From sequence record OP380604.1: a DNA stretch of 64,000 nucleotides; one strand, 5' to 3'. Below, piece after piece: positions 1-50,297 of this stretch; position 1 is the first letter of the stretch, and every line of letters begins with the position of its first letter. The position numbers were made by a program, and so were the translations under genes. The notes under the pieces were generated by a model. It did no database searches. It saw nothing but the letters and a program-made list of their open reading frames with translations, and was not told the origin of the DNA.

Positions 1-69
1 GTAGCTCATTGGTAGAGCACTCCCCTGATAAGGGAGGGGTAGACAGTTCAACTCTGTCCACGGCTACCA
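1..69 (+). tRNA. tRNA-Ile(GAU), 5' end truncated by window
   Basis: D arm GCTC/GAGC, anticodon stem CTCCC/GGGAG with loop CTGATAA, T arm GACAG-TTCAACT-CTGTC, ends ACCA. Confidence 0.9.
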
Positions 70-94
70 AATTCAACAACAATGAGAGAATAAA

Positions 95-190
95 ATGAAT
101 CTAATAATCCCGGTATTGTTCTTGTGTGATAACGATCATCAAGACTGTCACCCAGATGGATGTTTTTATTGTTCGCATTATTATTTGTAG
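95..190 (+). CDS. 31-aa Cys/His-rich micropeptide (MNLIIPVLFLCDNDHQDCHPDGCFYCSHYYL)
   Basis: Read manually; GAGAG upstream of ATG; fills gap between tRNAs. Confidence 0.4.
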   Translation: MNLIIPVLFLCDNDHQDCHPDGCFYCSHYYL

Positions 191-197
191 TTTAAAC

Positions 198-272
198 GGT
201 GTATTAGTATAATGGCTATTATTCGTGACTGTCTATCACAAGATACGGGTTCGATTCCCGTATACACCGCCA
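198..272 (+). tRNA. tRNA-Asp(GUC)
   Basis: Acceptor GGTGTAT/ATACACC, loop CTGTCTA, T loop TTCGATT, GCCA. Confidence 0.92.
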
Positions 273-558
273 GATTTTCTGCCTAGCAGGAAAGAAAGAA
301 CTTACCCGACAAAAGTTTAGTTCTTAGTTCTTTGAATAGTTTGACTGGATTCACTTCTGCAAACACATACAAACTCGAAATCTACTATTAATGGATAGCA
401 CTCCTTTACTTCGGTACTTGGATGTGCGGCTGAGAGGGAACAGCATATAAAAGTAACGCGGGTTAGTCACCGCTCCCGTATGTGAATCCGAAGACTTGCG
501 ATAATCACTTGCAAATAGTGATTATTCTAATGTATACTTTCGAGTATCTATTAGAATC

Positions 559-634
559 GGGGGTTTAGCTCAGTTGGGAGAGCAACTGGTTTGCAACCAG
601 TAGGTCAAGGGTTCGAATCCCTTAACTTCCACCA
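559..634 (+). tRNA. tRNA-Ala(UGC)
   Basis: Cloverleaf, G3.U70, loop TTTGCAA, ACCA. Confidence 0.95.
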
Positions 635-641
635 AATTTAA

Positions 642-716
642 GCGGGATTAGCTCAGAGGTAGAGCGTCAGCCTTCCAAGCTGTTCGTCGCCGATTCGAAT
701 TCGGTATCCCGCTCCA
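642..716 (+). tRNA. tRNA-Gly(UCC)
   Basis: GCGGGAT/ATCCCGC, loop CTTCCAA, TCCA. Confidence 0.95.
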
Positions 717-722
717 GACATT

Positions 723-797
723 GTGCCGGTAGCCAAGTGGTAAGGCAAGTGATTGCAAATCACTTTATCGTCTGTTCAAATCAGATCCGGTACTCCA
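723..797 (+). tRNA. tRNA-Cys(GCA)
   Basis: GTGCCGG/CCGGTAC, loop TTGCAAA, U73, CCA. Confidence 0.93.
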
Positions 798-813
798 TAA
801 TTGAGGGTCAACG

Positions 814-909
814 ATGTTGATTAAATCGATTTTAAAGATGTATACTGATAACTGTTGGCGTTGTGGTTATTACGGCAGTAAATGCATTTGTGATAGTCCA
901 TACGCTTGA
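814..909 (+). CDS. 31-aa CxxC...CxC micropeptide (MLIKSILKMYTDNCWRCGYYGSKCICDSPYA)
   Basis: Read manually; GAGGG RBS at 803-807; four Cys in zinc-ribbon-like spacing. Confidence 0.45.
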   Translation: MLIKSILKMYTDNCWRCGYYGSKCICDSPYA

Positions 910-933
910 TCAAACAACATTGAGAAATAAGTT

Positions 934-1359
934 ATGAGCTTACCTAGTTATGCGCTGTTCATGAAGAACGGCGATTGTGTTGGGTCATGCTTTATCAACT
1001 GCGGTTGGTGGCATGATGAACCTCGCACACTGAAACAAATAATTCGTTATACCGAAACCGATGAATGTCCTATTGACTATGATAGCGTAATCGCGTATGG
1101 TGTTACGTATAGCAATGACTTAGAATTCGAGCTTCTGAAAGCAGAAGAAACGGAAGCTAAGTTAAAAGAGATCGCTGAAAATAAGCGTAAGCAAAGTTGG
1201 GAAGATTTACATCAGAAGATGATCGAACGGATGAAACCGATTGATCGAATGCTTCCTGAATTGATTGCTGCTGAAATATACGGAGTTCAGCCAATGAATG
1301 AACATGTTCCTAACGTTTTTTCGTTGAAGGTAGTTTACGGCGATGATATTTCTTGCTAA
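934..1359 (+). CDS. Hypothetical protein whose C-terminus resembles the T4 gp23 major capsid segment containing the Gol peptide
   Basis: RMLPELIAAEIYGVQPMNEHVPNVFSLKVVYG vs gp23 RAIPNLIAFDICGVQPMNSPTGQVFALRAVYG. Confidence 0.75.
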   Translation: MSLPSYALFMKNGDCVGSCFINCGWWHDEPRTLKQIIRYTETDECPIDYDSVIAYGVTYSNDLEFELLKAEETEAKLKEIAENKRKQSWEDLHQKMIERMKPIDRMLPELIAAEIYGVQPMNEHVPNVFSLKVVYGDDISC

Positions 1360-1543
1360 GATACGTTATATGAAAAGCGAATACATGGGTTCATCTAAAT
1401 CATTCGATACCATTAAACTGGTAGAAGCAGAAGATGCAGACGAGGCCGATAGCAAAGTTCGCGAATATTACAACGACAAAAGTTCAGATTATGGCACATA
1501 TTATTCTGTGCTGGATGTTTCGATTGAAGAACCGATTAGGTGA
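1343..1543 (+). CDS. Hypothetical protein
   Basis: 66-aa ORF tiling with neighbours. Confidence 0.65.
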   Translation: MIFLAKIRYMKSEYMGSSKSFDTIKLVEAEDADEADSKVREYYNDKSSDYGTYYSVLDVSIEEPIR

Positions 1544-1546
1544 ATT

Positions 1547-1735
1547 ATGAGTAAAGAAATTCGAATGAGGTTTACATTAAAAGAACTGAAACAAATGATT
1601 GAACTTGCGGAAACCAATAACACAACTCTCGTTGATGTTGGTTATACCCCGGGTAGTATCAGTTCTATGGTTAGAGCTAAACCTGTTGTTAAAGATGCCG
1701 AATTCGTAGACATTACCGATTACGATAGTTGGTAA
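1547..1735 (+). CDS. Hypothetical protein
   Basis: 62-aa ORF, AGGTG RBS. Confidence 0.7.
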   Translation: MSKEIRMRFTLKELKQMIELAETNNTTLVDVGYTPGSISSMVRAKPVVKDAEFVDITDYDSW

Positions 1736-1745
1736 AAATAATTAT

Positions 1746-1816
1746 AGGGGCGTAGCAAATCGGTTATGCGGCGGATTCCAAATCCGTTGAGGTGGGTTCG
1801 ACTCCTACCGCCCCTG
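1746..1816 (+). tRNA. tRNA-Trp(CCA), CCA end not encoded
   Basis: AGGGGCG/CGCCCCT, loop TTCCAAA, T loop TTCGACT. Confidence 0.9.
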
Positions 1817-1825
1817 CAAAATAAC

Positions 1826-1901
1826 GCGCCGTTAGCTTAGTCGGTAGAGCATCGGACTTTTAATCCGAGGGTCGGTGATTCGAGTTCACCACGGCGCACC
1901 A
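1826..1901 (+). tRNA. tRNA-Lys(UUU)
   Basis: GCGCCGT/ACGGCGC, loop CTTTTAA, ACCA. Confidence 0.95.
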
Positions 1902-2113
1902 AATAGTCGAGTCATGTTGTTAGTCATGACTAACAATGTGGCGACAGGCTATAAAAAAGCGATAGATTGAAGAAGGGGCGAATAACTTAAACGTTACTAT
2001 TGACTTCCTCGCGCTTCTGTTACTGCGGCTTATGAGCGGTGGTAATAGTTAAATCTCTTTACAACACCAAGTGTTGATTATTGCCTCGGTATCTGATACT
2101 CTGGATACCGTCT

Positions 2114-2188
2114 AGTGAATTAGCTCAGAGGTAGAGCAAGTGCTTCATACGCACTGGGTCACTGGTTCGAATCCAGTATTCACTACCA
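2114..2188 (+). tRNA. tRNA-Met(CAU), elongator type
   Basis: AGTGAAT/ATTCACT, loop TTCATAC, ACCA. Confidence 0.9.
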
Positions 2189-2230
2189 AATAATCGCGCT
2201 TAAACCGCTGATTCACGTTTAAGCCTTCTC

Positions 2231-2304
2231 GGGGACGTAGATAACTACACAATCGCAGGTCACTGGGATCTGAGATACGGGTGGAAATCCCGTCGTCTCC
2301 ACCA
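2231..2304 (+). ncRNA. tRNA-like RNA with Ala-type acceptor and non-canonical loops
   Basis: GGGGACG/CGTCTCC+ACCA (G3.U70), stems GAT/ATC, CAGGT/ATCTG, ACGGG/CCCGT; loops lack D-loop GG, U33 and TTC. Confidence 0.7.
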
Positions 2305-2308
2305 AATA

Positions 2309-2435
2309 TAAGTGCATTGCCCTAAACATCATTGGACGAGATAAGCCCTCGTATGGAGCCAACGAGCCGCAAGCTTGTAGCAATCAAAGGCTAGTCAGTG
2401 GGTACTACCTGACGGGGATCGCGACAGTGCATTTA
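2309..2435 (+). ncRNA. Putative multibranch structured RNA
   Basis: 11-bp closing stem 2309-2319/2425-2435; inner hairpins ACGAG/CTCGT and GTCAG/CTGAC; no ORF. Confidence 0.45.
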
Positions 2436-2444
2436 AATTTGGTA

Positions 2445-2451
2445 CTAAATA
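2445..2451 (+). promoter_or_regulatory. Putative T4-type late promoter (CTAAATA)
   Basis: Same heptamer recurs at 2899, 4690, 6777, 20924, 54084 just upstream of genes. Confidence 0.5.
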
Positions 2452-2475
2452 GACTTGCTATTAAAGGAGTTTATA

Positions 2476-2715
2476 ATGAGTAATGATTTAGACGCTCGCG
2501 CCAATCGTGGCTCGGGTAATCAATGCAGCAAAGCATGGTACGACGCTCCATTGTGGAAAAACGTTGGTCCACTTGCTAGAAAGAAAGCAGCGGAAGCCGC
2601 TGAAAAAGAAAAACAAAAAGATGTTTACTCTACTGCGGAAACATGCGATAATGTTCCTGTTGTTGAAGAAGACTTAAAAGCAAAACAAAGACGATTGTTT
2701 AGTTTCGCTTACTGA
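2476..2715 (+). CDS. Hypothetical protein (79 aa)
   Basis: AAGGAG RBS before ATG 2476; ends QRRLFSFAY. Confidence 0.7.
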   Translation: MSNDLDARANRGSGNQCSKAWYDAPLWKNVGPLARKKAAEAAEKEKQKDVYSTAETCDNVPVVEEDLKAKQRRLFSFAY

Positions 2716-2719
2716 CAGA

Positions 2720-2795
2720 TCTCCGTTCGTCTAGTGGACTAGGACACTGCCCTTTCACGGCGGTAACATGGATTCGAATTCCATACGGAGAACCA
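2720..2795 (+). tRNA. tRNA-Glu(UUC)
   Basis: TCTCCGT/ACGGAGA, loop CTTTCAC, ACCA. Confidence 0.95.
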
Positions 2796-2815
2796 AATTG
2801 ATTAGTGCGCTAAGA

Positions 2816-2888
2816 TGCGAGTTGGAGGAGAGGCCGTCCTCGCTGGGCTCATATCCCAGAGATCACCTGTTCGAATCAGGTACTCGCT
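2816..2888 (+). tRNA. Initiator-type tRNA-Met(CAU) embedded in a 14-bp flanking stem, no CCA
   Basis: 1:72 mismatch (T.T), GGG/CCC anticodon stem, loop CTCATAT; flanks 2802-2815/2889-2902 pair. Confidence 0.8.
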
Positions 2889-2914
2889 TCTTAGCGTACT
2901 AAATAAAGAATAAT

Positions 2915-3006
2915 GGATGTGCTGCAATGACGGTGGTATTGCACCAGACTGTAAATCTGGCCCCACAGGGTAAACATTGTAGGTTCGACTCCTACCGCAT
3001 CCACCA
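2915..3006 (+). tRNA. tRNA-Tyr(GUA)
   Basis: GGATGTG/CGCATCC, loop CTGTAAA, long variable arm, ACCA. Confidence 0.93.
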
Positions 3007-3012
3007 AATTTC

Positions 3013-3084
3013 GCCTCTATAGCTCAGTGGTAGAGCAACTGCCTTGTAAGCAGTAGGTCCTCGGTTCGAGTCCGAGTGGGGGCT
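3013..3084 (+). tRNA. tRNA-Thr(UGU), CCA not encoded
   Basis: GCCTCTA/TGGGGGC, loop CTTGTAA. Confidence 0.9.
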
Positions 3085-3168
3085 CAGTAAGAGGGATCCA
3101 GATGCCCCGTTTGCAGCATCTGGTATGTAACTCGTTACATAAATGCTTTCTTTCGAGTGATCATTTAT

Positions 3169-3244
3169 GTGACGGTAGTTCAGTTGGTAGAACTCCAGGT
3201 TGTGATCCTGGTAGTCACGGGTTCGAAGCCCGTCCGTCACCCCA
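3169..3244 (+). tRNA. tRNA-His(GUG)
   Basis: GTGACGG/CCGTCAC, loop TTGTGAT, C73, CCA; -1 base is T. Confidence 0.93.
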
Positions 3245-3249
3245 ATCAC

Positions 3250-3325
3250 GGGTCCTTAGCTCAGTTAGTAGAGCATATGCCTGAAGAGCATAGTGTCCTC
3301 GGTGCGATTCCGAGAGGGCCCACCA
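3250..3325 (+). tRNA. tRNA-Phe(GAA)
   Basis: GGGTCCT/AGGGCCC, loop CTGAAGA, T loop TGCGATT, ACCA. Confidence 0.9.
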
Positions 3326-3350
3326 GTTTAATCGCTTTGAAAGGTGAAAT

Positions 3351-3456
3351 CGCTAATGCTTTTAAGTGCAATGAGATAACTTCTCGAAAGTCGGGATATA
3401 GATTGCCCCGTCGGTATTGATTTCATGTAGAGTTCGATTCTCTACCTTAGCGTCCT
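3351..3456 (+). ncRNA. tRNA-like RNA with enlarged central domain
   Basis: CGCTAA/TTAGCG acceptor-like stem, T arm GTAGAG-TTCGATT-CTCTAC, ATGAGA/TTTCAT stem enclosing ~44 nt. Confidence 0.55.
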
Positions 3457-3472
3457 ATTATAAAAGAATATT

Positions 3473-3549
<77 letters not shown>

Positions 3550-3675
3550 GAGTTGCCTGTAAAGGCCCGTTAAAGAGAATGCTAACAATGTCCTAGGAAA
3601 CTTTGTTAGAAGTCCAGCTGAAAATTCCCTCTCCCGTTTTGAACGGTGATGCGATTTAAGGGGCGAGTGATTCAC

Positions 3676-3704
3676 TTGTGGATCATTTCAAAGTATTCTA
3701 ATAT
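3676..3704 (+). promoter_or_regulatory. Putative sigma70-like promoter with -10 in hairpin loop
   Basis: TTGTGG-N17-TAATAT; arms 3687-3699/3705-3717. Confidence 0.45.
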
Positions 3705-3835
3705 AGAGTTCTTTGAATTGATTCAAGCGTTGCATCGTTTGAATATGTGGAGTTACCTTAGTAGGCCGTAGAGATACGTTGTCCGAAAGATAAGACGATG
3801 ATCCACGTTAAACGTTCATATTCGTCCCAGTTTAT

Positions 3836-3911
3836 AGGGGATTCGCCTAGTTGGCCCAAGGCACCGGGTTTGATCCCGGTATCACAAGTTCGAATCTTGT
3901 ATCCCCCGCCA
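3836..3911 (+). tRNA. tRNA-Gln(UUG)-like with 6-nt anticodon loop
   Basis: AGGGGAT/ATCCCCC, CCGGG-TTTGAT-CCCGG, T loop TTCGAAT, GCCA. Confidence 0.75.
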
Positions 3912-3919
3912 AATTTAGC

Positions 3920-3948
3920 TTGCAAAGGCTAAAATGAGCTGCTATGAT
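3920..3948 (+). promoter_or_regulatory. sigma70-like promoter with -10 in hairpin loop
   Basis: TTGCAA-N17-TATGAT; arms GAGCTGC/GTAGCTC. Confidence 0.55.
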
Positions 3949-4050
3949 TCCCGTAGCTCGTTAAATTATCAAACGGGAAGGTGATGCGCGTATGTAGCCA
4001 GAACGTAATGTTCAAGAGTCATGACGACATAGAGCCGTGTCGAAGAATTT

Positions 4051-4142
4051 GGAAGCGTGGCAGAGTATGGCTTATTGCAACTGACTTGAAATCAGTCAGT
4101 CGAGAAATCGGCCCGTGGGTTCAAATCCTACCGCTTCCGCCA
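4051..4142 (+). tRNA. tRNA-Ser(UGA)
   Basis: GGAAGCG/CGCTTCC, loop CTTGAAA, long variable arm, GCCA. Confidence 0.95.
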
Positions 4143-4166
4143 AATCAAACAATAGAGAGTTATATT

Positions 4167-4388
4167 ATGAAAGCGACAAAACAAGATCTTGAACTAGCAT
4201 CCCGTTTCGCTGATAAAGCTGATTCATACGGTTTCGCTACTACTCAAGGTGATGCCAAATGTACCAATCAACAAATCGAAAAGCTGCTAAAGCTTGGACT
4301 GATTAAAGTTACTCGCGGTGTTCACTGCATTGGTCAGAAAGATTTTGGTGGTTTTGTTCGAAGAGGCACTCACTATTGCAAAGCTTAA
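4167..4388 (+). CDS. Hypothetical protein (73 aa)
   Basis: GAGAG RBS, ATG 4167 (longer ORF-track start overlaps tRNA-Ser). Confidence 0.7.
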   Translation: MKATKQDLELASRFADKADSYGFATTQGDAKCTNQQIEKLLKLGLIKVTRGVHCIGQKDFGGFVRRGTHYCKA

Positions 4389-4498
4389 AACGAGAGATCG
4401 AGGAAAATGTAAGAGCCTCGTTCGAGTTATCCGGCAAGCGTGTTACTGATTCTCAATGGGAACAGATTAAACGAGTTGCTGAATACATCAAAGAACAT

Positions 4499-4586
4499 GG
4501 AGAAATGACAGAGAGGCCGAACGTAGCGGATTGCTAATTCGTAGGCCCGCAAGGGTCCGTGGGTTCGAATCCCACTTTCTCCTCCA
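4499..4586 (+). tRNA. tRNA-Ser(GCU)
   Basis: GGAGAAA/TTTCTCC, loop TTGCTAA, long variable arm, CCA. Confidence 0.92.
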
Positions 4587-4588
4587 AT

Positions 4589-4666
4589 GCACCAATGATG
4601 GGAATTGGTCTACCTGGCTGATTTAGATTCAGTCGCTTCTCGGTTCGAATCCGAGTTGGTGCACCA
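4589..4666 (+). tRNA. tRNA-Leu(UAG) with short variable loop
   Basis: GCACCAA/TTGGTGC, loop TTTAGAT, variable loop only CGCTT, ACCA. Confidence 0.88.
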
Positions 4667-4689
4667 AATAAATTGGTAGCCGCATACGT

Positions 4690-4696
4690 CTAAATA
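4690..4696 (+). promoter_or_regulatory. Putative late promoter (CTAAATA) for the endonuclease
   Basis: 16 nt upstream of ATG 4713. Confidence 0.55.
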
Positions 4697-4712
4697 ATAC
4701 AAATAAAGTATT

Positions 4713-5441
4713 ATGGAGAACGTTATGGCTACTCATAGAAAACCGGAACAAATAGAAACTACCGATCTTTGTAAATATGGATGCGGAAATATCGCAAAAT
4801 ATAAAAGTGTTGGTGGGAATCTGATGTGTGAATGTTCGTCAAATAAATGTCCGGTTAATATAAAAAAGAATTCAGAAAAACTAAAAGCACTATATGATTC
4901 TGGTATGAGAAAATCCGGAGCGGAGCTGTATAAATCTCTTAGCCACGACATCAAAACTAGAATGTCGTGGAGTAAAGGATTAACAAAAGAAACCAATTCC
5001 GAACTGGAGAGACCAACTTTGGTTGGTAAACGGTTTGGTGCATCATTGTACGGCCACACAGAAGAATCAAAGCGCAAGATTTCCATAGCCAGAACGGAGT
5101 GGCTAAAGAAGACTGAAAACCGAACGAATCTTGGAAGATTCAAAAAGTCTTGGATGGAAGAAACATTTGAATCGTATCTAAATGAAAATAAAATTACGGG
5201 TTGGATAGCAGAGAAACACTTCTACTCTCCTGTTACAAAGAAAAATTATTATGTTGACTTTCTCTTTCAAGAAAAGATGCTTATATTAGAATTGGATGGA
5301 ACCCAACATAGAAAGTCTATAGAACATGATAAACAAAGAGACTTGTGGTTCAATAGTATTGGATACAAAGTTATAAGAGTTCCGGTTGACGAATTCAAAC
5401 GGAGATTTTTCTCCGGGGTTGGGTTTATCGATCTACTGTAA
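4713..5441 (+). CDS. Free-standing homing-type endonuclease: Cys-rich N-terminus, NUMOD3-like motif, DUF559/Vsr-like PD-(D/E)XK domain
   Basis: CKYGCG..CECSSNKCP; GHTEESKRKISIAR; YVDFLFQEKMLILELDGTQH..DKQRDLWFNSIGYKVIRV. Confidence 0.82.
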   Translation: MENVMATHRKPEQIETTDLCKYGCGNIAKYKSVGGNLMCECSSNKCPVNIKKNSEKLKALYDSGMRKSGAELYKSLSHDIKTRMSWSKGLTKETNSELERPTLVGKRFGASLYGHTEESKRKISIARTEWLKKTENRTNLGRFKKSWMEETFESYLNENKITGWIAEKHFYSPVTKKNYYVDFLFQEKMLILELDGTQHRKSIEHDKQRDLWFNSIGYKVIRVPVDEFKRRFFSGVGFIDLL

Positions 5442-5446
5442 TAAAT

Positions 5447-5471
5447 AAAAGGGAGCTTCGGCTCCCTTTTT
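5447..5471 (+). terminator. Intrinsic terminator
   Basis: AAAAGGGAGC-TTCG-GCTCCCTTTTT. Confidence 0.85.
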
Positions 5472-5486
5472 CATTAGGAGTATAAT

Positions 5487-5873
5487 ATGAGTTTCAAAGA
5501 GTTTAAAGGCGATACAAACTCAAGTGTTGGCGAACTAATTTCCAAGCTTCTGAAAAGCGTGGCATACGTTCATCACCAACACCTGACTACTACTATCTAT
5601 AGCCGTCACAAAGCGCTCCAAGCGTATTACGAAGAACTTCCAGAGCTGATTGATAGCTTTGCAGAATGCGCTATCGCTCGTGGATATGCTCAGAGTTTTA
5701 CAGCTACTCATGCGGAAGTTGAAGTTGAAATGATGATTGACAATTTCCTGCAAGAGTGTACTATGGTGCATGAGTATTTGGAGACTAAACGCCATTTCGA
5801 TCTGGTGAATACACTGGAAGATATCATGACGTTTTTGACTTCGATTAGATACAAATTGAATCTTAAAGGTTGA
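5487..5873 (+). CDS. Ferritin/Dps-like four-helix protein
   Basis: HHQHLTTTIYSRHKALQAYYEELPELIDSFAE motif typical of T4-like phage Dps-like proteins. Confidence 0.7.
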   Translation: MSFKEFKGDTNSSVGELISKLLKSVAYVHHQHLTTTIYSRHKALQAYYEELPELIDSFAECAIARGYAQSFTATHAEVEVEMMIDNFLQECTMVHEYLETKRHFDLVNTLEDIMTFLTSIRYKLNLKG

Positions 5874-5899
5874 CTATCATTAGGAACTGTGTAATAATG
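5870..5899 (+). promoter_or_regulatory. Early-type promoter with inverted repeat around -10
   Basis: TTGACT..TAATAAT; arms TAGGAACTGT/ATGGTTCCTA. Confidence 0.65.
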
Positions 5900-5913
5900 G
5901 TTCCTATAAACAT

Positions 5914-5988
5914 GGCCCCGTAGCTGGAGGGTTCAAGCTGGCAGCTCATAACTGCTTGATGTGGGTTCGATTCCCACCGGGGCCACCA
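5914..5988 (+). tRNA. tRNA-Ile2(CAU) (lysidine type)
   Basis: GGCCCCG/CGGGGCC acceptor and loop CTCATAA resemble enterobacterial ileX; ACCA. Confidence 0.8.
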
Positions 5989-6785: not shown

Positions 6786-6870
6786 AGGTGTCAGTTGTAA
6801 GTCTCAATTGGAAGAGCTACTGGGCAGAAACCCAGTGGGGTGCGGGTTCGAGTCCTGCCTTCTGACGCCT
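6786..6870 (+). ncRNA. tRNA-like RNA with extended acceptor stem, 6-nt anticodon-position loop, no CCA
   Basis: AGGTGTCAG/CTGACGCCT, D arm CTC/GAG, ACTGGG-CAGAAA-CCCAGT, GCGGG-TTCGAGT-CCTGC; CTAAATA at 6777. Confidence 0.6.
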
Positions 6871-9555: not shown

Positions 9556-10155
9556 ATGGCGAAACTTTTTTTCACGCATAGTGCGATGAACGTGGGCAAG
9601 AGCACTCAATTACTGCAAGTGGCTTTCAACTACAACGAGAGAAATCAAAACGTTCTGCTGTACAAACCTGCGTTTGACACTAGAACAGAAGGTACGATTG
9701 GATCACGTATCGGTATCCAGCGTGAGTGTCGCTGTGTGCATGTTGACGAAAACATGTTTACAATGATCGAAAAAGAGAGTAAACTGTCCGATATCGCCTG
9801 TGTTCTTGTTGATGAAGCACAGTTCCTGACTGAAAAACAAGTGTGGGAACTGTCCGACGTTGTTGACAAGCTGGATATCCCTGTTATGTGCTACGGACTG
9901 CGTACCGATTTTCTCGGTAACTTGTTCCCTGGCTCTAGGGCATTACTTTCGATTTCAGATGAAATTAGACAACTGTCTGGTATCTGTGATTGTGGTAGAA
10001 AATCCTGTATGGTAGCTCGCGTTGATGATAACGGCAATGTTATCCGTCGAGGTGAACAAATTTGCATTGGGGCTGAACAACGTTACATTTCGTTCTGCCG
10101 CAAGTGCTGGAAAAACAAACTGTCCTATGATTGGGACAAATTCAAACAAACCTGA
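9556..10155 (+). CDS. tk: Thymidine kinase (type II)
   Basis: HSAMNVGKSTQLL P-loop, LVDEAQFL, CYGLRTDF, CDCG and CRKC zinc motifs. Confidence 0.97.
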   Translation: MAKLFFTHSAMNVGKSTQLLQVAFNYNERNQNVLLYKPAFDTRTEGTIGSRIGIQRECRCVHVDENMFTMIEKESKLSDIACVLVDEAQFLTEKQVWELSDVVDKLDIPVMCYGLRTDFLGNLFPGSRALLSISDEIRQLSGICDCGRKSCMVARVDDNGNVIRRGEQICIGAEQRYISFCRKCWKNKLSYDWDKFKQT

Positions 10156-10168
10156 AAGAGGTAATTCT

Positions 10169-11605
10169 GTGTCTAATTTTATGAATGCAATGGTACAAGC
10201 TCAAGCCCGCACTGCTAACGGTGCTGTCACTAACTACACCACTGGCGACAAGTGTCTGAATCTGTTTTCTCAGATTGGTTCCTCTCGCGGGAAAGATCTG
10301 ACCCAGATGTTTGTTGATGCTTATACCGAGTCTCCTGACTGGGCTGTTCGCATTCTGCAATGGGCTCGCGATATTCGCGGTGGTGCCGGTGAACGTGAAC
10401 AATTCATCCGCCTGCTGAAAGTCCTTGCGCATCGTCACCCTGTTGACGCCACCGTAGTTCTGATGAACACTCCTGAAATCGGTCGCTTCAAAGACGTGGT
10501 AGCAATGTTCAATTCTCCGATTCAGGACGCTGCTGTGGCTATCATGGTTGATGCAATCATGACCAAGCAAAACGGTCTTGCTGCAAAGTGGGCACCTCGG
10601 AAGGGCAAAGAAGCCGGTATTCTGGCCAAAGCTATGCGAATGACTGCTAAAGAATATCGTCACACTATCGTCCGTATGTCGAACACCGTTGAACAAAAGA
10701 TGTGTGCTCGTCAGTGGGACGGTATTGAGTTCGGTAAACTGCCGTCTGTTGCATCTGCTCGATATCAGAAAGCATTCCTGAAAAACGCGAACGAGCGTTA
10801 TGTTGCTTATCTTGAGTCTCTGAAAAAGGGTGAGGCTAAGATCAACGCTGCTGCGGTTTATCCGTATGACATGATCAAATCCCTGCGTACCGGTTCTTCT
10901 GTTGCTGCTGATGCACAATGGAAAGCACAACGCGACTGGATGGCTGGCTCCACTGAAAACGTAATCGCGATGGTTGACGTTTCTGGCTCTATGGGCACTC
11001 CGACCGCTGTTGCTGGCTTGTCTGCTATGGACATCGCGATTTCTCTGGGTCTGTACATCGGCGAACGCTCGCGCGGTGTGTTCAAGAACGAAGTGATTAC
11101 CTTCGATGATAATCCTGAGTTCTACAACATCAAAGCGAAAGGCGACGATCTGCAAAGCATGGTGAATCATCTGGGACGCGCTCCGTGGGGTGGCTCTACC
11201 AACTTTGCTGGTGCATTCAAGATCATTCTTGATCGCGCTGTACGCAATCGAGTTCCGCAAGAAGATATGCCGACTATGATGGTTGTCTTGTCTGACATGG
11301 AATTCAACGTTGCTGATGGTGGCTATAGTGGTTACTATCGTATGCGTGACCGTGAGCCTACCAACTTTGAGGTGATTCGTCAGACTTACCGCGACGCTGG
11401 TTACGAAATGCCGAAACTGGTGTTCTGGAATCTTTGCCCGCGTCCGACTAACAATCCGGTGACCAAAGATGATCAAGGCACTGCTCTTGTTTCTGGTTTT
11501 AGTCCCGCAATCATGGAGACAATCCTGAGTGCGAAAGAGTTTAACCCGATGCAAATCATGCTCGACAAGATCATGAGCGACCGTTACGTCGGTATCGACT
11601 TCTAA
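10169..11605 (+). CDS. DUF2828/UCP015417 helical (TROVE-like) domain plus vWA domain protein
   Basis: RDIRGGAGER, KWAPR, VEQKMCA..W..I.F.KLPS, VDVSGSM MIDAS, GSTNF, VLSDMEF, LVFWNL; GTG start with GAGG RBS. Confidence 0.88.
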   Translation: MSNFMNAMVQAQARTANGAVTNYTTGDKCLNLFSQIGSSRGKDLTQMFVDAYTESPDWAVRILQWARDIRGGAGEREQFIRLLKVLAHRHPVDATVVLMNTPEIGRFKDVVAMFNSPIQDAAVAIMVDAIMTKQNGLAAKWAPRKGKEAGILAKAMRMTAKEYRHTIVRMSNTVEQKMCARQWDGIEFGKLPSVASARYQKAFLKNANERYVAYLESLKKGEAKINAAAVYPYDMIKSLRTGSSVAADAQWKAQRDWMAGSTENVIAMVDVSGSMGTPTAVAGLSAMDIAISLGLYIGERSRGVFKNEVITFDDNPEFYNIKAKGDDLQSMVNHLGRAPWGGSTNFAGAFKIILDRAVRNRVPQEDMPTMMVVLSDMEFNVADGGYSGYYRMRDREPTNFEVIRQTYRDAGYEMPKLVFWNLCPRPTNNPVTKDDQGTALVSGFSPAIMETILSAKEFNPMQIMLDKIMSDRYVGIDF

Positions 11606-11632
11606 AAAAAGCCACCTTCGGGTGGCTTTTTT
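11605..11632 (+). terminator. Intrinsic terminator
   Basis: AAAAAGCCACC-TTCG-GGTGGCTTTTTT. Confidence 0.9.
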
Positions 11633-11633
11633 A

Positions 11634-11661
11634 TTGACAACTGATTTGGATATGAGATAAT
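11634..11661 (+). promoter_or_regulatory. Early promoter
   Basis: TTGACA-N16-GATAAT directly after terminator. Confidence 0.7.
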
Positions 11662-11684
11662 ACGAATCCAACTAGGAGAATGAT

Positions 11685-12098
11685 ATGTTCAAGAGTGAAG
11701 ATTGTAAGAAGATTGTGGCGAAAGTAGAAGAGTTGCGAATTGATTGGAATCAAAAAGTTTCTCAGTTTCACGATAAAGATAACATTCGGAAGTTGACAGG
11801 AAAATATTCAAATGTTAGTATGGATCTCGAAGATATGACGATTAGCGTCACGTATGAGACTGGCTGGGATGACGACTTCCACGTTTGTAGCATTGATGTT
11901 GCCGTTGATGACCGTGAGATTGATGATGTTCTGAAAGATATCGAGTCCGAGATTGCTCGTTCATTCCAGCATATCAAACAACGCGATGAAGACTATCGCG
12001 TTAAAAAAGAAAAATGGGACGCTAATCAGAAGCAACAACGTTTAGAGCAATACAAGCGGCTGCAAGCTGAGTTCGGTCAAATTTCAACTCCAATGTGA
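11685..12098 (+). CDS. Hypothetical protein
   Basis: 137 aa, GGAG RBS. Confidence 0.75.
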   Translation: MFKSEDCKKIVAKVEELRIDWNQKVSQFHDKDNIRKLTGKYSNVSMDLEDMTISVTYETGWDDDFHVCSIDVAVDDREIDDVLKDIESEIARSFQHIKQRDEDYRVKKEKWDANQKQQRLEQYKRLQAEFGQISTPM

Positions 12099-12107
12099 GA
12101 ATTAAAA

Positions 12108-12362
12108 ATGAGTTCGATTATTGAGTTTATCCTTGCTAACGTTAAGATGTATGGCGATGCAATGGCAAAAATCCACAATATGGAGTTTAAGGCCGATGAT
12201 GTTTCGTTTAATCTTATCAAGAATGAGATAGTGGTAAAATTTAATGCTAACGGCACGGATTTGGAACATAAGTTCGAAATGGATTTCTTCCGAAATCAAA
12301 CTAGCGTGTCTGCTTGGATAAAGCAAGTGGAAGATTTCGTCAAACAGGTCAACGGAGAATAA
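12108..12362 (+). CDS. Hypothetical protein
   Basis: 84 aa, tiling. Confidence 0.7.
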   Translation: MSSIIEFILANVKMYGDAMAKIHNMEFKADDVSFNLIKNEIVVKFNANGTDLEHKFEMDFFRNQTSVSAWIKQVEDFVKQVNGE

Positions 12363-12363
12363 A

Positions 12364-12633
12364 ATGCAGAATACAACAATGCTGATTTACAATATCAAGA
12401 CATTCAAACGCGCATTGGTAGAATATGCCAATCAGATCAAGCGTAACAACGATTCCAATTGGGAAGCGAACGACGCTATTATTGATGACGAAGGAAACGT
12501 TGAGTTCTGGATTCATTCGTATCAAGGCGAAGGTGATTTTTATCGTGCCACTTTGAATCTGAAACTGTTTGCCGATGACCGTGTTATCGAACATCATTTG
12601 GCAAACTGTAAATTGGAGATTGCTGGTAAATGA
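12364..12633 (+). CDS. Hypothetical protein
   Basis: 89 aa, GGAG RBS. Confidence 0.7.
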   Translation: MQNTTMLIYNIKTFKRALVEYANQIKRNNDSNWEANDAIIDDEGNVEFWIHSYQGEGDFYRATLNLKLFADDRVIEHHLANCKLEIAGK

Positions 12634-12836
12634 TATCGGAGAATCTATCTCGAATTCTTCGGACTATCGAGTGTATTGGATATGACGAAGTAAGTACCGA
12701 CCCTATGGATAGAAGTGATTTCATTACACAACACGATCACACCGAGCTGTTGAGGAGTGGATACTCTTTCCATATTAGACAGATCAAACAAAACGGATAT
12801 CACGTTTTCTTAGTGATGGCTCCGCGAAATGTTTGA
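12630..12836 (+). CDS. Hypothetical protein
   Basis: 68 aa, ATGA overlap. Confidence 0.65.
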   Translation: MISENLSRILRTIECIGYDEVSTDPMDRSDFITQHDHTELLRSGYSFHIRQIKQNGYHVFLVMAPRNV

Positions 12837-13173
12837 AATTCTGTATATTCTCATTCTCGGCCATTTTGTGGCCGATTATGTTCTGCAATCCGATAGTATT
12901 GCTCGTGGTAAGAATCCAATCAATTCTCCGCTCTATGGCGTGCATTGGTTCTACTGGCTAACTGCTCATAGTGCTACTCATGCGCTTGTGGTATACGTTG
13001 CAACCAAGAGCGTTTGGCTTAGTTTGGCAGAGCTTGTGAGTCATTGGATCATCGATTATGCTAAGTGCAACAGCAAGATTGGATTACATCAAGATCAAGC
13101 ACTTCATATTGTGTGTAAAATTTTGATCGCAATCGCGTATTTTTGCTTGACTGGTAATCCAGAGTCATTATAA
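12829..13173 (+). CDS. DUF3307 membrane protein
   Basis: LGHFVADYVLQ, LTAHSATH, SHWIIDYAK, DQALHI. Confidence 0.85.
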   Translation: MFEILYILILGHFVADYVLQSDSIARGKNPINSPLYGVHWFYWLTAHSATHALVVYVATKSVWLSLAELVSHWIIDYAKCNSKIGLHQDQALHIVCKILIAIAYFCLTGNPESL

Positions 13174-13201
13174 TGGTGACATTAACTAAGAGGAAGTTAT
13201 C

Positions 13202-13678
13202 ATGAGTATGAAATATCTGACTAAACTGCTGTTTCCTAATACCTATACTGCTATTGTCGAAGAAGGCAAGTGGCTTGGCATGGAAGCAAAGCGTAAAGAA
13301 CAAGAAGAACAGAAAGAGAAAGATCGTCTGTTGTCACTTTCATACAAACGTCCTCTTGGTATTCCCATGATCTCGTTCGACGGTGCTGGTAATGTTCGAG
13401 TTGTAGTAAACACGGAATACATGTATGATGGTGCCGTAACTCGTTCCGTTGATCTGATTTCAGGTGAGGAGTTTATTGACTTCACCACTCAGATTCGATA
13501 CAGTGAGGAGTTGGCGGGATTAATTGCACGTAATAAGATCGAGGATGTTTACGCGCTGATTCATCGCGGTAACGCCAAGATCATGAAAGTAAATCCGAAT
13601 CGGGAAACGTTGATTCGTTTGAAGTTCAAACTGGCAGTGAAAAATTTCAACGAAAAAGGTTTACCCTCTAAGAAATAA
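13202..13678 (+). CDS. Hypothetical protein
   Basis: 158 aa, GAGG RBS. Confidence 0.75.
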   Translation: MSMKYLTKLLFPNTYTAIVEEGKWLGMEAKRKEQEEQKEKDRLLSLSYKRPLGIPMISFDGAGNVRVVVNTEYMYDGAVTRSVDLISGEEFIDFTTQIRYSEELAGLIARNKIEDVYALIHRGNAKIMKVNPNRETLIRLKFKLAVKNFNEKGLPSKK

Positions 13679-13688
13679 GTGTTAAGAT
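13660..13688 (+). promoter_or_regulatory. Promoter for the tRNA-like RNA trio
   Basis: TTTACC-N17-TAAGAT ending ~7 nt before element A. Confidence 0.6.
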
Positions 13689-13691
13689 TGT

Positions 13692-13821
13692 TTTGTTGTC
13701 GCGATTAGTTCAGCGGGAGAGCGCCTCTGATCGCAGAGAAGTATCGGGACCGGTTCGATTCCGTTAAGTGTGGGCACATTGAGAAACGTCACTGGTTCGA
13801 ATCCAGTATCGCGACAACAAA
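13692..13821 (+). ncRNA. tRNA-scaffold RNA A (extended acceptor stem, large insert with second TTCGA loop, no CCA)
   Basis: TTTGTTGTCGCGAT/ATCGCGACAACAAA; D arm GTTC/GAGC; T arm ACTGG-TTCGAAT-CCAGT. Confidence 0.7.
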
Positions 13822-13958
13822 CAACATTATGCTGGCGGTTCGTCTAATTGGTAGGACACTGTAAAATTCATTCTGATAAGAATGTTTTCCGCAATAAATA
13901 CTCGCCTGTTAAGCCTGTAATCTGGGTTCGAGGCCCAGACCGCCAGCATAGTGTTGTT
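13820..13958 (+). ncRNA. tRNA-scaffold RNA B (20-bp terminal stem, ~60-nt insert, no CCA)
   Basis: AACAACATTATGCTGGCGGT/ACCGCCAGCATAGTGTTGTT; D arm GTCT/GGAC; T arm CTGGG-TTCGAGG-CCCAG. Confidence 0.7.
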
Positions 13959-13966
13959 AAAAATTT

Positions 13967-14088
13967 GGGGAAGTAGCTCAGTGGTAGAGCAGTAGTCGCA
14001 AAAAGCGGAATCTGATTAAGATTCTTTACCGCAAACCCTTGCAAAATCAAACTGTTGGTCGTGGGTTCGAATCCCACCTTCTCCGCCA
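13967..14088 (+). ncRNA. tRNA-scaffold RNA C (54-nt insert in anticodon loop, G3.U70, GCCA end)
   Basis: GGGGAAG/CTTCTCC, D arm GCTC/GAGC, GTAGT/ACTGT stem, T arm GTGGG-TTCGAAT-CCCAC. Confidence 0.78.
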
Positions 14089-14137
14089 ATATCTGTCATT
14101 AGTGATAGTGTATTAAAACCACCTGTAGGAAACAAAG

Positions 14138-20963: not shown

Positions 20964-23900
20964 ATGTTAACAACCAAACAATTATTCGAACGTCAAGAAG
21001 AAGAGGAATACCAACGCTTCTTGGCAGAAAATACCATGTATGATGCCGCAAGCAAGGCAACATTTGTTGATGATGAAACCGCGATCATGAATGCTTTCAT
21101 GTTCAACTTCATCGGTATTCTTGGTAGTTTCAATGCCGCTCGCCAGATGAATCACCTGTCTAGCCTGCGCAAGTATGAGCGTTATTTCAAGAGTGACGGC
21201 CAGTTGATGTTAAAGAATATCGGAGACGATAACCATAACATTTCTCTGGTGTTGAAACTCATGGCTGATAAGAAAATGTTTATCAGTGACGCTAAGGTAA
21301 GCGAAATGACCCGCTTCCTAGTTAAGTGTAAAGCTGGTGTTATTAATACCGTTGATGATGATATCGTCCGTGGTTGGGTAGCAAACATCAAATCTACCGC
21401 GCTGATGAACTTGCATCCTAAGCTCCGTGAGCTGATGAATAAGTTCAAGACCGGAGCTATTAGTCTGATCGACACTTCCAAAGAGTTGCGTCGAGTCTTG
21501 AAGAAATTCCCAGAAGCGGGTGAAGATTTGTGGACAGTTAGTATGTATGTTAAGTATGCGCGCCTTGCTGGTGTAAATACCGTAACTGTCGGTACTGCTG
21601 CTGGTGCAGGTGTTACATCGAATGTAGGTGACGATGATGACGACGACAAGAACGATAACGTGGCACAAGTCCACGCTTCTCCTGACGTCAATGACGTTAC
21701 CGATGATGCTGCTCCGAGCGTCCAGGACGAGCCTGTAGCTGTTCCTGTTCAGCCAGACTATCTGACATATGATCATGAAGCGGGATTGCTCCAATTCATT
21801 TCCAGTCAGATTGAAAAGTGCGTTGATTCTGATACCGGTCTGAGAGGATTACAGGCAATGTCACAGTTGGCTTATCCTACTGTTAGCAATCAAGGACATA
21901 TGGTAACTGGATTCGAGTTTGATCTTACCGACGAAGAACAAGTTGAAATCCATAACAAGTGGCGCCAACGTTATGTGTACACTGTTACCCAGTTGACTGA
22001 AATCGGAAAACGAATCGCTGCATTCCTGTTTATGGATAATTCCACGGGTGTATACGCAATCGAAGAAGCGTTGGAATTGAAAAACGTTGAGTTTCTACGC
22101 AACAACATTTCATTCTTCCGTGGGCTAAAAGAAAAGTACGGCATTCTTGGCAATCAAATTCCGTATTCTGCTTATCAGACTATGGCAATGACTTTTGGCA
22201 ATATTAAGTCTGACCCAACTTGCTGGCTATTCGGATTTAATACTACCGACGTTGCTCTTGAGATTACAAGCGGAAAACTAGGCAAAGCCATGCTTGATCA
22301 TTACAAGGGAAACAACGGCGATAGTATCGTAATTGGTATTCTGGGATACATGCGTGAAATGTCTCCTACTATCCGTCAGATGTATTTCAATTGCCTGTTG
22401 GAAGTAATTTCAACTGCTTATGTCTATATGATGTCCTATTCTAGCTATCTATCGGATGCTTTCAAATCTCTGTTGTTTGACGGCTCATTTGCTGATATGA
22501 TTGGTTGGGATACAGTAACGAGTTACGTGCTGGAAAGATACAAGCAAGTATATCCTCCGTATAAATGGGATTCTTGGAACGCAAATAGCAAAGTTTCGCT
22601 GTGTCGTCATGGACTTGAGTTTCTTTTGACTCCCGCGAATAAAGCTAACGCCGATTTCTCTTTCATCAACGATCATTGGACTAAACTGTACGCACTCGAT
22701 GACGCGGATTTCGTTGATACAATCAAGCGAGTAAAAGACTCTTATAAGGGTTCCGTTGAATATCCACTAGAAAACATGGACGCGGCAGATGTTTCTATGA
22801 TTGCTAAGTGCGTTATTCGTGCTCTTGAACTTGGTATTATTTTCCCGAATCGTGTTAATGCTATGGCTTATAACATGGTACCGAGCATGAAGCAGCGAGT
22901 TAGAGACGCATTGGATGCATATATCACAAAAGATACCAGCGTGGGTTCTTCTTGGGAAGAACAAGAAAACGCTTTGATGTCCGCTGCTTTCATTCATGGC
23001 GAAAGCGACGTTGCTGCTGGTGCTGAATATGTTATCAATAAAATCAAGGGAACTCCAAACGCGGGTGCTAAGACTCGAATTTTCTTTATGTCGAATCGTG
23101 GTACAATGCCTGAATACAGACAAAAGATTTTCCTTGGTGGATACAGAGCACTAGGCAAAGATCTGGACATTTACGATCTTGGCATCAATAAAAACAGTAA
23201 GTATGATAATCTTTACTCCGCTTTCCTGAAATATTATGATTTTGAGGGAGAAGACGCGGTAGAATTCATGAAGCTTGAAGTTAAGAACGGATTTAAGTTC
23301 TTTAACGCCGAGAACGGTAAATCTATCAGTGTTCGTGATCATAAGCAAGGTATGCAACAAGCATTGGTAGACATTATGACTGACGCCGTAGAAACTGATC
23401 CTGCTATCACGGACATTTTCTTCGATAACTTGGAAACATATTATCGTGGTAAAGTGCGAGATCAATTGGCTGCAATCAAGTTTGTTTACGGACAAGTTCT
23501 TGAGGGTCCAATTAACTTGTTCGACAAGTTGGATCGTCGTCGTGTTAAGCAGATGTTTGAGTTTAACGAAATTAACCCAACTGAGTTGGTGAAACAAGCG
23601 AAGATCAAACTCGGCAAGAATGAGAAGTTCACCGATTATATCAAGCGTGTGGAAGCCGAAGCTGCGAAGGGTGACGGTGTTGTTCCAAAAGTTAAAGCAG
23701 TTGACGACAATATTACCAACGAACAGAAATACCTGATTGGTAAGCATTTGATCGATAACTATTACGCTGGTAAACACGGTAACGTTTATCCTCTAATTCT
23801 GCGTAGTATGACCGTGAGTTTCCCAGACGGTGAATTCAAAAAGTTCATGCAAGAACAGATCGACGCTGGTAAACTTGAACAAGTCGTTCCATGTTTCCAC

Positions 23901-26816: not shown

Positions 26817-27175
26817 TGAACGTTATCGAAATTGGTGCCAAAGAATACGCGATTTTTATTTTGGTTTTGTTTTTCTTTTCAATCGTGTGTCGTATTATCT
26901 ATGTTAGGATTATGAACTATCTGGATCGCGATTCATTTTTGAATAAGCTCCCCGTTGTGAATAAGAATTTGCTCAAATATGGGATTCAAATTCATGAGCA
27001 AGAGAAAGATTTCGTTTTTCTTGGCTGGGGAAGAACTACTGGACCAATGTCAGTTAGTCAAGCAAAACGATTCATGCTTGCGCTCGGACGAGACGAAGAA
27101 CTTGTGGTAGATTACTACAAAGAAAGCTCAAGTGTAATTAAAAAGAGTGTTGATTTCTTTAAGGAAACAGAATGA
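26816..27175 (+). CDS. Membrane-anchored hypothetical protein
   Basis: N-terminal TM segment. Confidence 0.7.
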   Translation: MNVIEIGAKEYAIFILVLFFFSIVCRIIYVRIMNYLDRDSFLNKLPVVNKNLLKYGIQIHEQEKDFVFLGWGRTTGPMSVSQAKRFMLALGRDEELVVDYYKESSSVIKKSVDFFKETE

Positions 27176-29537: not shown

Positions 29538-29662
29538 TAACGTGAAGGGGTAGAAAATACCCCTCACAAAAAGCTTGTTTTGTGTCTAAAGATATGAGAC
29601 AATCTTTTTGTGATAAGAAATCACAAACAAAACACAATCAATCAATGAAGGGAGCCTTCAAA

Positions 29663-34900: not shown

Positions 34901-35170
34901 ATGATCATTCATCAAAACGGCCGGTATTCGATTTGTGATACCGACAAATCAATATCAAGTTTAAACTGGACATTCTGTATTGACGGATTTCCAAAACAAT
35001 CATACGGGACAAAGGATTGTCCTAGTTTGAGTACAGCTATCAAGGACTATCGGAAACATTTAGTCCGAGAAATCGAACATTCAAAGAAAAAAGTTGAATA
35101 TCATGCCAAACGTGATAAGCTGTTAACTCAAGAGTTAAACGAACTGGAGAAGGAACATGACTTTAGCTAA
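34901..35170 (+). CDS. Hypothetical protein
   Basis: 89 aa. Confidence 0.7.
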   Translation: MIIHQNGRYSICDTDKSISSLNWTFCIDGFPKQSYGTKDCPSLSTAIKDYRKHLVREIEHSKKKVEYHAKRDKLLTQELNELEKEHDFS

Positions 35171-50269: not shown

Positions 50270-50297
50270 GGGCTTCGGCCCTCTTATAGGAGATATC

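Follow-up and report, generated by a model that had tools for sequence, protein, structure and literature searches.

Sequence record OP380604.1 was the source of the 64,000-nucleotide (nt) stretch of DNA analyzed here, which we refer to as the window. It is 100% identical to Aeromonas phage avDM12-TAAL, a T4-like member of the Straboviridae near phages Ah1 and Aeh1, and its first part (1-5988) is an array of about 20 tRNA genes. Our analysis concerns a gene on the + strand that encodes a DUF2828/DUF7788 protein of 478 amino acids (aa) (10169-11605) and the small RNAs encoded downstream of it. A thymidine kinase gene (tk; 9556-10155) directly precedes the DUF2828 gene, and seven small open reading frames lie between it and a 459-nt gap (13679-14137) ahead of an rI.1-like gene. 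This gap contains three tandem structured RNAs, called A, B, and C here. Because tk and rI.1 are neighbours in T4, as stated in a note in the Aeh1 record, the block from the DUF2828 gene to the RNAs represents inserted DNA in comparison with T4. Synteny of the block extends over 13 Aeromonas phage records, and the placement of B and C 2.2-2.4 kb downstream of the DUF2828 gene, both on the + strand, is kept in them. Column identity in the gap is 89%, which is higher than that of the region as a whole (81-89%).

A sequence-only reading of the window had proposed that this gene encodes a Ro-like DUF2828 protein with a von Willebrand factor A (vWA) domain, and the gene assignment was borne out by database searches. 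Pfam returned DUF7788 (2.6e-51), DUF2828 (4.8e-31), and a weak match to VWA_2 (1.1e-5), and PHROGs assigned the protein to phrog_850, 'RNA-binding protein' (2.3e-165). The start codon (ATG at 10169) lines up with residue 1 of 30 homologues. We then modelled the protein with AlphaFold2 from 31 homologues (predicted local distance difference test, pLDDT, 85; predicted template modelling score, pTM, 0.85). The predicted architecture consists of helical repeats (approximately residues 9-255) in a ring that is closed by the vWA domain (approximately residues 260-460), which carries the MIDAS motif DVSGSM. The DxSxS residues of this motif (D270, S272, and S274) are invariant in the 31 sequences, and hhalign places VDVSGSM opposite phage phiLo Ro60. 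When the model was compared with the PDB using Foldseek, the best seven matches were all to Ro60 over its full length, with template modelling (TM) scores of 0.60-0.64 and E values of 4e-8 to 1e-6; the best had an E value of 4e-8 and a TM score of 0.63, and matches to other proteins covered the vWA domain only, with TM scores of about 0.2. Similar results were obtained with VIA-align, where Xenopus Ro60 gave a Z score of 23 (2i91: 23.1) over 400-408 residues with a root-mean-square deviation of 3.7 Å (model residues 9-458), followed by phage phiLo Ro60 (Z 16.4), Deinococcus radiodurans Rsr (Z 14.4), and human Ro60 (Z 14). Matches confined to vWA domains reached Z scores of at most 9.6, and with both programs the full-length structural matches were Ro60 chains only. 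The comparison with Ro60 that had been proposed along with the Ro-like assignment thus came out as a full-length Ro60 fold (TM 0.63, Z 23). On its predicted structure, the DUF2828 protein belongs to the Ro60 structural class as a distant member of phage type.

This protein family is large. More than 7,800 protein clusters were matched in our search, and 710 of approximately 50,700 phage records carry DUF2828, including those of Felixounavirus, mycobacteriophages, and Listeria, Staphylococcus, Campylobacter, Enterococcus, Bacillus, and Vibrio phages. The mycobacteriophage genes are annotated 'Ro-like RNA binding protein', and we found no paper that names DUF2828 in the context of Ro60 or partner RNAs. 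Plants also encode DUF2828 proteins, one of which, T31B5.30, is named in a note of the Aeh1 record.

The three RNAs in the gap are arranged head to tail on the + strand. RNA A (13692-13821) has a 13-bp terminal stem, an 'anticodon' hairpin with a short loop, two T-arm hairpins, and no CCA. RNA B (13829-13949) is tRNA-like and un-permuted, with a terminal stem of 10-14 bp, a D arm (13842-13857), a T arm (13922-13938), no CCA, and a fold z-score of -4.96. RNA C (13967-14088) is also tRNA-like and un-permuted and has D and T arms, an anticodon stem of 4-5 bp, and a 7-bp acceptor stem with G3-U70, a discriminator G, and an encoded CCA. Scores with the Rfam tRNA model (RF00005; gathering score 29) were 54.3 bits for C, 32.8 bits for A, and 13.6 bits for B. 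In the Rfam tRNA alignment, the anticodon loop is replaced by an insertion of 53-55 nt in A and C (53 nt in C), and B has a comparable insertion; none of the three contains a 7-nt anticodon loop with U33, and the loop of the hairpin found at this site in B is 6 nt long. The trio is kept in seven Aeh1-like phages with 89% column identity, and compensatory changes among them occur in the T stems, in the acceptor extension of A, and in the hairpins of the inserts. These results uphold the earlier claim of a tRNA-like trio about 2 kb from the gene. The long terminal stem lacking CCA that had been claimed for A and B is present in both (13-14 bp); this description would be wrong for C, with its 7-bp acceptor stem and GCCA end. 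BLAST searches with the trio outside the Aeh1 group returned only T-arm matches to tRNAs. The YrlA model (RF02553) scored 15.4-22.4 bits in the window and 18.1 bits in a metagenomic contig described below (L012), which is under its gathering score of 69. The sequencing runs that matched the locus were two wastewater runs dominated by contigs of relatives and by other tRNAs, and these are uninformative on expression and RNA ends.

RNAs B and C share a module at the site of the anticodon loop that we call the handle. It comprises a 5-bp hairpin with a loop that starts with UG, followed by UUU(U/A)CCGCAA (variants UUUACAGCAA, UUUACGGCAA, and AUUCCUGCAA). In B (13869-13894, + strand) the sequence is CAUUC-UGAUAA-GAAUG and then UUUUCCGCAA, and in C (14008-14034, + strand) it is GAAUC-UGAUUAA-GAUUC and then UUUACCGCAA. 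Loops of handles include UGAUAA, UGAUUAA, UGUCAA, and UGAGAA. The loop and motif of the B handle vary as they do in the wider family described below (UGUCAA and UGACGA; AUUCCUGCAA and UAUUCCGCAA), and the C handle stem changes from GAAUC/GAUUC to GAUUC/GAAUC in phiAS5 and phiWae14, which is a compensatory change. The general design, which is seen in both B and C, is a helix of 5-7 bp of free sequence with CNGCAA 2-4 nt past one strand and UG directly past the other. We searched for it in RNA A, in two other tRNA-like elements of the window (2802-2902 and 6786-6870), and in the rest of the window, and found it in B and C only. RNA A has a conserved structure but no handle, so that it may or may not belong to the system. 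Further handle RNAs occur at the start of the tRNA array in Ah1 and PX29 (L007 6-128; L009 29-106 and 221-344), at a position that corresponds to just upstream of the first base of the window.

To place B and C in a wider context, we fetched 80 viral loci with DUF2828 homologues, mostly 44-48% identical, which are designated by L numbers. The DUF2828 gene is in or beside a tRNA array in 37 of these loci, on the same strand every time. A generic tRNA covariance model found insert-bearing tRNA-like RNAs adjoining the gene in two unrelated contigs, L012 and L041, where the insertions contain the same closed hairpin as in B and C and UAUUCAGCA or UUUACAGCG (L012 11895-12018 and 12025-12140; L041 4278-4391). 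In many other loci, orphan T arms lie within about 100 nt of the DUF2828 gene. These belong to a permuted architecture, which begins with AAAG, a helix strand (X), (U)U(A/C)CNGCAA, and an A-rich spacer. It continues with the 3' strand of the anticodon stem, a T arm, and an acceptor hairpin that is closed by a loop or deleted, and it finishes with a D arm, the 5' strand of the anticodon stem, an A-rich spacer, the second helix strand (Y), and UGAUAA. The hairpin Y-UGAYAA-X-UUUCCGCAA of B and C is therefore a circular permutation of the terminal stem X-UUUCCGCAA...Y-UGAYAA. In the majority of phages, the handle helix is formed by the two ends of the RNA and the acceptor stem is closed or deleted, a topology like that of YrlA; in the Aeh1-like Aeromonas phages and two metagenomic lineages, the ends of the RNA lie in the acceptor stem, and the handle forms a closed hairpin. 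A permuted copy lies right beside the closed-hairpin forms in L012. The same RNA can thus exist in both circular permutations, which speaks for the handle and the tRNA elbow as its two functional ends. The handle is the constant part of this RNA family and the bodies vary; the acceptor stem is missing from some members, and 'mini' members have no tRNA body at all. No Rfam family covers the handle RNAs.

An alignment of 17 permuted-form RNAs adjacent to DUF2828 was used to examine covariation. The terminal helix is 97.5% paired with changes on both sides at five of its seven pairs, the T stem is 100% paired, and the anticodon and acceptor stems covary. The covariation score was 0.554, as compared with 0.157 for shuffles (none of 500 reached the observed score) and no more than 0.15 when partners were slid. 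With a covariance model built from the permuted form (R2), matches with E<0.01 adjoin DUF2828 on the gene's strand in at least 34 of the 80 loci, and weaker matches occur at consistent positions in approximately 14 more. Overall, the majority of 77 other phage loci have the handle beside DUF2828. Because R2 was trained on such sequences, we added a model-free pattern consisting of a 7-bp stem, CNGCAA, and UG; this strict form was adopted since a looser handle pattern was too unspecific. The strict pattern had 28 matches within 1.5 kb of the gene on its strand and three on the other, where the opposite strand led us to expect 2.8 (Poisson P 6e-19). Its density was 10 times the rate on the opposite strand and approximately five times the rate on the same strand farther out.

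Lineages outside the R2 training set gave similar results. Felixounavirus warpig has a 57-bit match among tRNA genes just past the DUF2828 gene. In mycobacteriophage DyoEdafos, three RNAs (R2 42 bits) directly follow the 'Ro-like RNA binding protein' gene, and the 9.4-kb stretch examined there contains zero annotated tRNA genes. Campylobacter phage CP81 has a handle RNA just upstream of its DUF2828 gene, and Listeria phage LP-124 has three just upstream and an RtcB gene 1.3 kb downstream. As negative controls, T4 and Thermus phage phiLo have no DUF2828 gene and no convincing R2 match; the single match in T4, at 29.8 bits, straddles two adjacent tRNA genes. The co-occurrence across phages that had been put forward as a check on this gene and long-stem tRNA mimics therefore holds for handle RNAs, and the long stem is not the common feature.

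Some loci show additional elements. In several (L074 3140-3245, L069 9386-9491, L025 147-293, and others), the permuted mimic is preceded by another conserved RNA, which has the same handle (UACAGCAA) but a body of its own that includes AACCUUUCYGGAGGGGAAAG and AAAAACUCGCCAAAA; it is a possible second partner of the YrlB kind. In LP-124, a match to the ROOL RNA (L092 2471-3022; 87 bits, gathering score 99) is found among tRNAs approximately 1 kb upstream of DUF2828. The Shine-Dalgarno sequence and the start codon of the DUF2828 gene often follow directly on strand Y, and either the handle strand with UGAUAA or a minimal hairpin abuts these elements at L059 9920-9990, L028 9948-9998, and L083 9960-9995. 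Because the handle abuts the start site in this way, it is suggested that the protein autoregulates its own translation.

Together, these data point to a widespread viral counterpart of the Ro60/Y RNA particle, of which we found no description, and we consider it likely that B and C are Y-RNA-like partners of the Ro60-like DUF2828 protein. We infer binding from the predicted fold, the conservation of the handle, and the genomic linkage. The handle would be the site bound by the protein, so that a partner RNA would consist of a constant handle and a variable body, which here takes a near-complete tRNA shape with acceptor stem, D and T arms, and anticodon stem. By analogy with Ro60 and Y RNA, such an RNA could gate the ring or tether it to a factor that recognizes tRNA. 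The particle might serve in handling transcripts of the phage's own tRNA operons or in countering host defence. The idea of a Ro-like ribonucleoprotein put forward in the sequence-only reading is thus retained for the protein fold and for B and C, but not for RNA A or the elements at 2802-2902 and 6786-6870, which have no handle. The long 5'/3' stem, which had been given the role of the Y-RNA feature, does not fill it, as the partners share instead a handle composed of a helix, CNGCAA, and UG. Likewise, attachment through the acceptor side had been raised as a caveat implying a new topology; because the shared handle sits at the position of the anticodon arm, this caveat was misplaced. A defined family of partner RNAs would turn the protein, which is among the commoner uncharacterized phage proteins, into a testable particle. 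It would also account for many odd 'tRNA-OTHER' and intron-tRNA annotations in phage genomes.

Several points weigh against partnership. There is no match to Pfam TROVE (PF05731) at E<=0.01 in the 478-aa protein. Comparison with phiLo Ro60 by hhalign gave 86% probability over the vWA half only (query-profile columns 274-460, residues 265-453), and a profile search of PDB sequences reached phiLo Ro60 at an E value of 0.72, again in the vWA region only. Homology to TROVE at the level of sequence was rejected because the alignment is confined to the vWA part, and for the same reason we describe the protein as having a Ro60-like fold rather than as a demonstrable Pfam TROVE member. The RNAs in the window are 2.2 kb from the gene with the seven small reading frames intervening and are thus not adjacent, and co-occurrence inside the Aeh1 group is mere synteny. 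The information content of the handle is low, with the loose pattern occurring at 0.55 per kb near the gene as compared with 0.31-0.35 per kb. The genome-wide result that the best hit is adjacent is partly circular because R2 was trained on sequences adjacent to DUF2828. Lastly, extra handle RNAs in jumbo phages lie up to approximately 45 kb from the gene.

One alternative explanation is that the handle is a signal for processing or stability of phage tRNA operons, such as a nuclease entry site or punctuation hairpin, with the proximity of DUF2828 incidental and the protein unrelated. The position of the gene within or next to tRNA arrays (37 of 80 loci) fits this idea, as do the scattering of the extra handle RNAs in tRNA regions and the packing of A, B, and C like a tRNA precursor. 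We nonetheless consider it unlikely, because handle RNAs directly follow the gene in DyoEdafos, where no tRNA genes are annotated in the 9.4 kb examined, mini forms lacking a body occur right at the gene's ends, and the predicted protein fold is that of an RNA-binding ring. In addition, Dictyostelium has Class I RNAs, which are stable, abundant, and cytoplasmic, and these are defined by the same handle (PMC7919456).

Another explanation is that the gene-adjacent handle is mainly a cis-acting translational operator, through which the protein would repress its own synthesis via the leader, with B and C being by-products or titrating decoys. In L083, L074, L036, L028, and CP81, the 3' strand of the handle and UGAUAA run into an AAGGA Shine-Dalgarno sequence and ATG, and L059 has a minimal handle hairpin at that very site. 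This function would be compatible with the partner-RNA reading and does not exclude it. As a sufficient account it is quite improbable, since the RNAs are downstream of the gene in the L027 group, L037, L060, and DyoEdafos and 2 kb away in the window, and since tandem copies with elaborate, covarying tRNA-like bodies would be superfluous for an operator.

That B and C are decoding tRNAs with short spliced introns is highly improbable: C does have a canonical acceptor stem, D and T arms, an encoded CCA, and an Rfam score of 54 bits, ARAGORN -i yields intron solutions (such as tRNA-Val with a 47-nt intron), and PX29 is annotated with a joined tRNA-Leu, but no excision restores a 7-nt loop that has U33 (for Val, the loop proposed is CGCACAA), the ARAGORN solutions for C disagree (Val-CAC in the window and Aeh1, Leu in PX29), the called identity shifts among close relatives (Val, Leu, Ala, and 'OTHER'), and the supposed intron is the most conserved part and comes from a family that also has members lacking a tRNA body. 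We also know of no short-intron splicing system in bacteria, which counts against introns, and for want of a restorable canonical loop and a consistent identity, intron-containing tRNAs were rejected.

We also examined other elements of the window. The sequence-only reading had linked the Ro-like protein to a dispersed RNA-repair toolkit. The genes are real, in that Pfam identifies RlaP (27172-28125), HD (35157-35609), HAD_SAK_2 (52227-52718), and SPFH (58950-59894), but they are 15-47 kb away and we found no link to the DUF2828 gene. In Ah1, a search for RNA ligases, also proposed in that reading, revealed an Rnl1-type ligase approximately 100 kb from the gene and no RtcB. An Rnl1-type ligase without RtcB is ordinary for T4-like phages. 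The HAD_SAK_2 gene belongs to a three-gene run (48870-52718) with a TET-associated glycosyltransferase and a weak N6-methylase-like gene, which suggests that it is part of a DNA-modification cluster rather than of RNA repair. Other genes in the window encode a NAMPT-type nicotinamide phosphoribosyltransferase (29582-31108), a UvdE UV endonuclease (33971-34894), and a 1212-aa protein (20964-24602, + strand) whose sole Pfam signal is a weak PARP catalytic domain at residues 955-1027.

Four tRNA-related elements on the + strand have unusual features. The gene at 2802-2902 is a tRNA(CAU) according to ARAGORN and Rfam (47 bits) and has a 14-bp leader/trailer duplex stacked on its acceptor stem; the fold z-score is -6, the tRNA gene is conserved in Ah1, Aeh1, and PX29, and the duplex may be a processing site specific for double strands. 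The intergenic element at 6786-6870 folds weakly like a tRNA, with a terminal stem of 8 bp, a T arm, and CAGAAA as its 6-nt 'anticodon' loop, and scored only 22 bits with our own tRNA model. An unannotated tRNA-like RNA (2231-2304) has the acceptor stem GGGGACG/CGUCUCC with G3-U70, A73, and CCA, a T-arm loop of UGGAAAU, and a stunted D arm; it scored 32 bits with our model and has a weak match to tmRNA in Rfam, and its acceptor end looks to be of the alanine type, like that of tmRNA. The tRNA at 3836-3911 has a 6-nt anticodon loop, UUUGAU, for which ARAGORN gives the anticodon 'tg'. Because its counterpart in Ah1, Aeh1, and PX29 is a normal tRNA-Gln(UUG), we attribute this loop to a 1-nt deletion or a sequencing error.

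As a comparison with known systems, the stable RNAs C and D of T4 (species 1 and 2) are likewise small, come from a T4-type tRNA cluster, and have no known role, and in rnaC a T arm is combined with a terminal stem; T4 has neither a DUF2828 gene nor a handle RNA. Another parallel is Bas63, a Felixounavirus. Its Ro60-like gp130 is encoded directly upstream of tRNA genes and, in a preprint using PhageMaP, counters the Ppl defence system; the authors speculate that some neighbouring tRNAs are Y RNAs and identified no RNAs (PMC11482910). A DUF2828 homologue (40% identity) occupies the same place in Felixounavirus, so that gp130 is, by position, a probable relative. In a sister Felixounavirus, candidate RNAs are present as unannotated elements among the tRNA genes (L089 7741-7821 and 7907-8046). 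The anti-Ppl activity is the only published phenotype we found for this probable relative (PMC11482910), and the handle RNAs would offer a molecular lead for it.

The handle also resembles the Class I RNAs of dictyostelids, which have a 6-bp covarying helix joining the ends, followed by CCUUACAGCAA, and which end in CUG(U) (PMC7919456). One example, GUUGAC-CUUACAGCAA...GUCAAC-UG, shares the design of the phage handle and has an almost identical motif (PMC7919456, supplementary sequences). Unlike the phage RNAs, Class I RNAs are eukaryotic, 42-65 nt long, without a tRNA body, and reported to be unique to Dictyostelia, and their known binder is a protein with an RNA recognition motif (RRM) (PMC7919456). 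Our searches of the Atlas and AlphaFold-DB for a Dictyostelium DUF2828 protein gave only viral clusters or organism-masked entries and did not confirm one. Tentatively, the handle may be a universal recognition element of DUF2828-type rings, both in phages that infect Gram-negative, Gram-positive, or actinobacterial hosts and in eukaryotes, in which case Class I RNAs would be Y-like and the tRNA bodies of the phage RNAs might capture or mislead host factors that recognize tRNA, including defence nucleases; we consider this less likely than not. It would give the Class I RNAs of social amoebae a candidate class of partner. Among the supplementary candidates dismissed by the authors of that study, sequences from Arabidopsis (UGUUUUC-AUUACAGCAA...GAAAAC-UG) and Capsaspora share the handle (PMC7919456).

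The closest known counterpart is Ro60/Rsr with its Y RNAs. Both systems have a ring of helical repeats closed by a vWA domain with a MIDAS (predicted in the case of DUF2828) and small RNA genes within a few kb on the same strand, as for YrlA and YrlB and for phiLo Ro60 with Yrl1 and Yrl2. YrlA-type partners are tRNA mimics encoded within a few kb of Ro60 on the same strand, with a motif near the terminal helix (PMC4201824; PMC12135203). In both systems, at least one RNA is a tRNA mimic with a T arm, a D arm, and an acceptor-like stem, the protein-proximal helix (putative in the handle RNAs) is on the anticodon side, and the 5' strand of that helix leads into a short conserved motif. The motifs differ, being CNGCAA with a 3' UG (U(U/A)(C/A)CNGCAA) in the handle and GNCGAAN0-1G or GGUCCGA in Y RNAs, where GNCGAAN0-1G is the YrlA motif near the 5' end (PMC4201824). 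The DUF2828 protein also differs from Ro60 in having no detectable TROVE sequence signature, and the earlier survey of Chen et al. (2014) searched TROVE-annotated genomes only (PMC4201824). RNAs B and C are un-permuted: both terminate in the acceptor stem, and C carries CCA. We did not find this form described for Y RNAs. YrlA has its ends in the protein-binding helix and a loop-closed acceptor, which is true of the relatives in other phages and not of B and C; the joining of the tRNA-like module through the anticodon side is common to YrlA, B, C, and these relatives. The linkage between DUF2828 and handle RNAs is the same kind of evidence as that by which bacterial Y RNAs were defined, and with it the Ro60/Y RNA principle would extend to a second, far larger viral branch.

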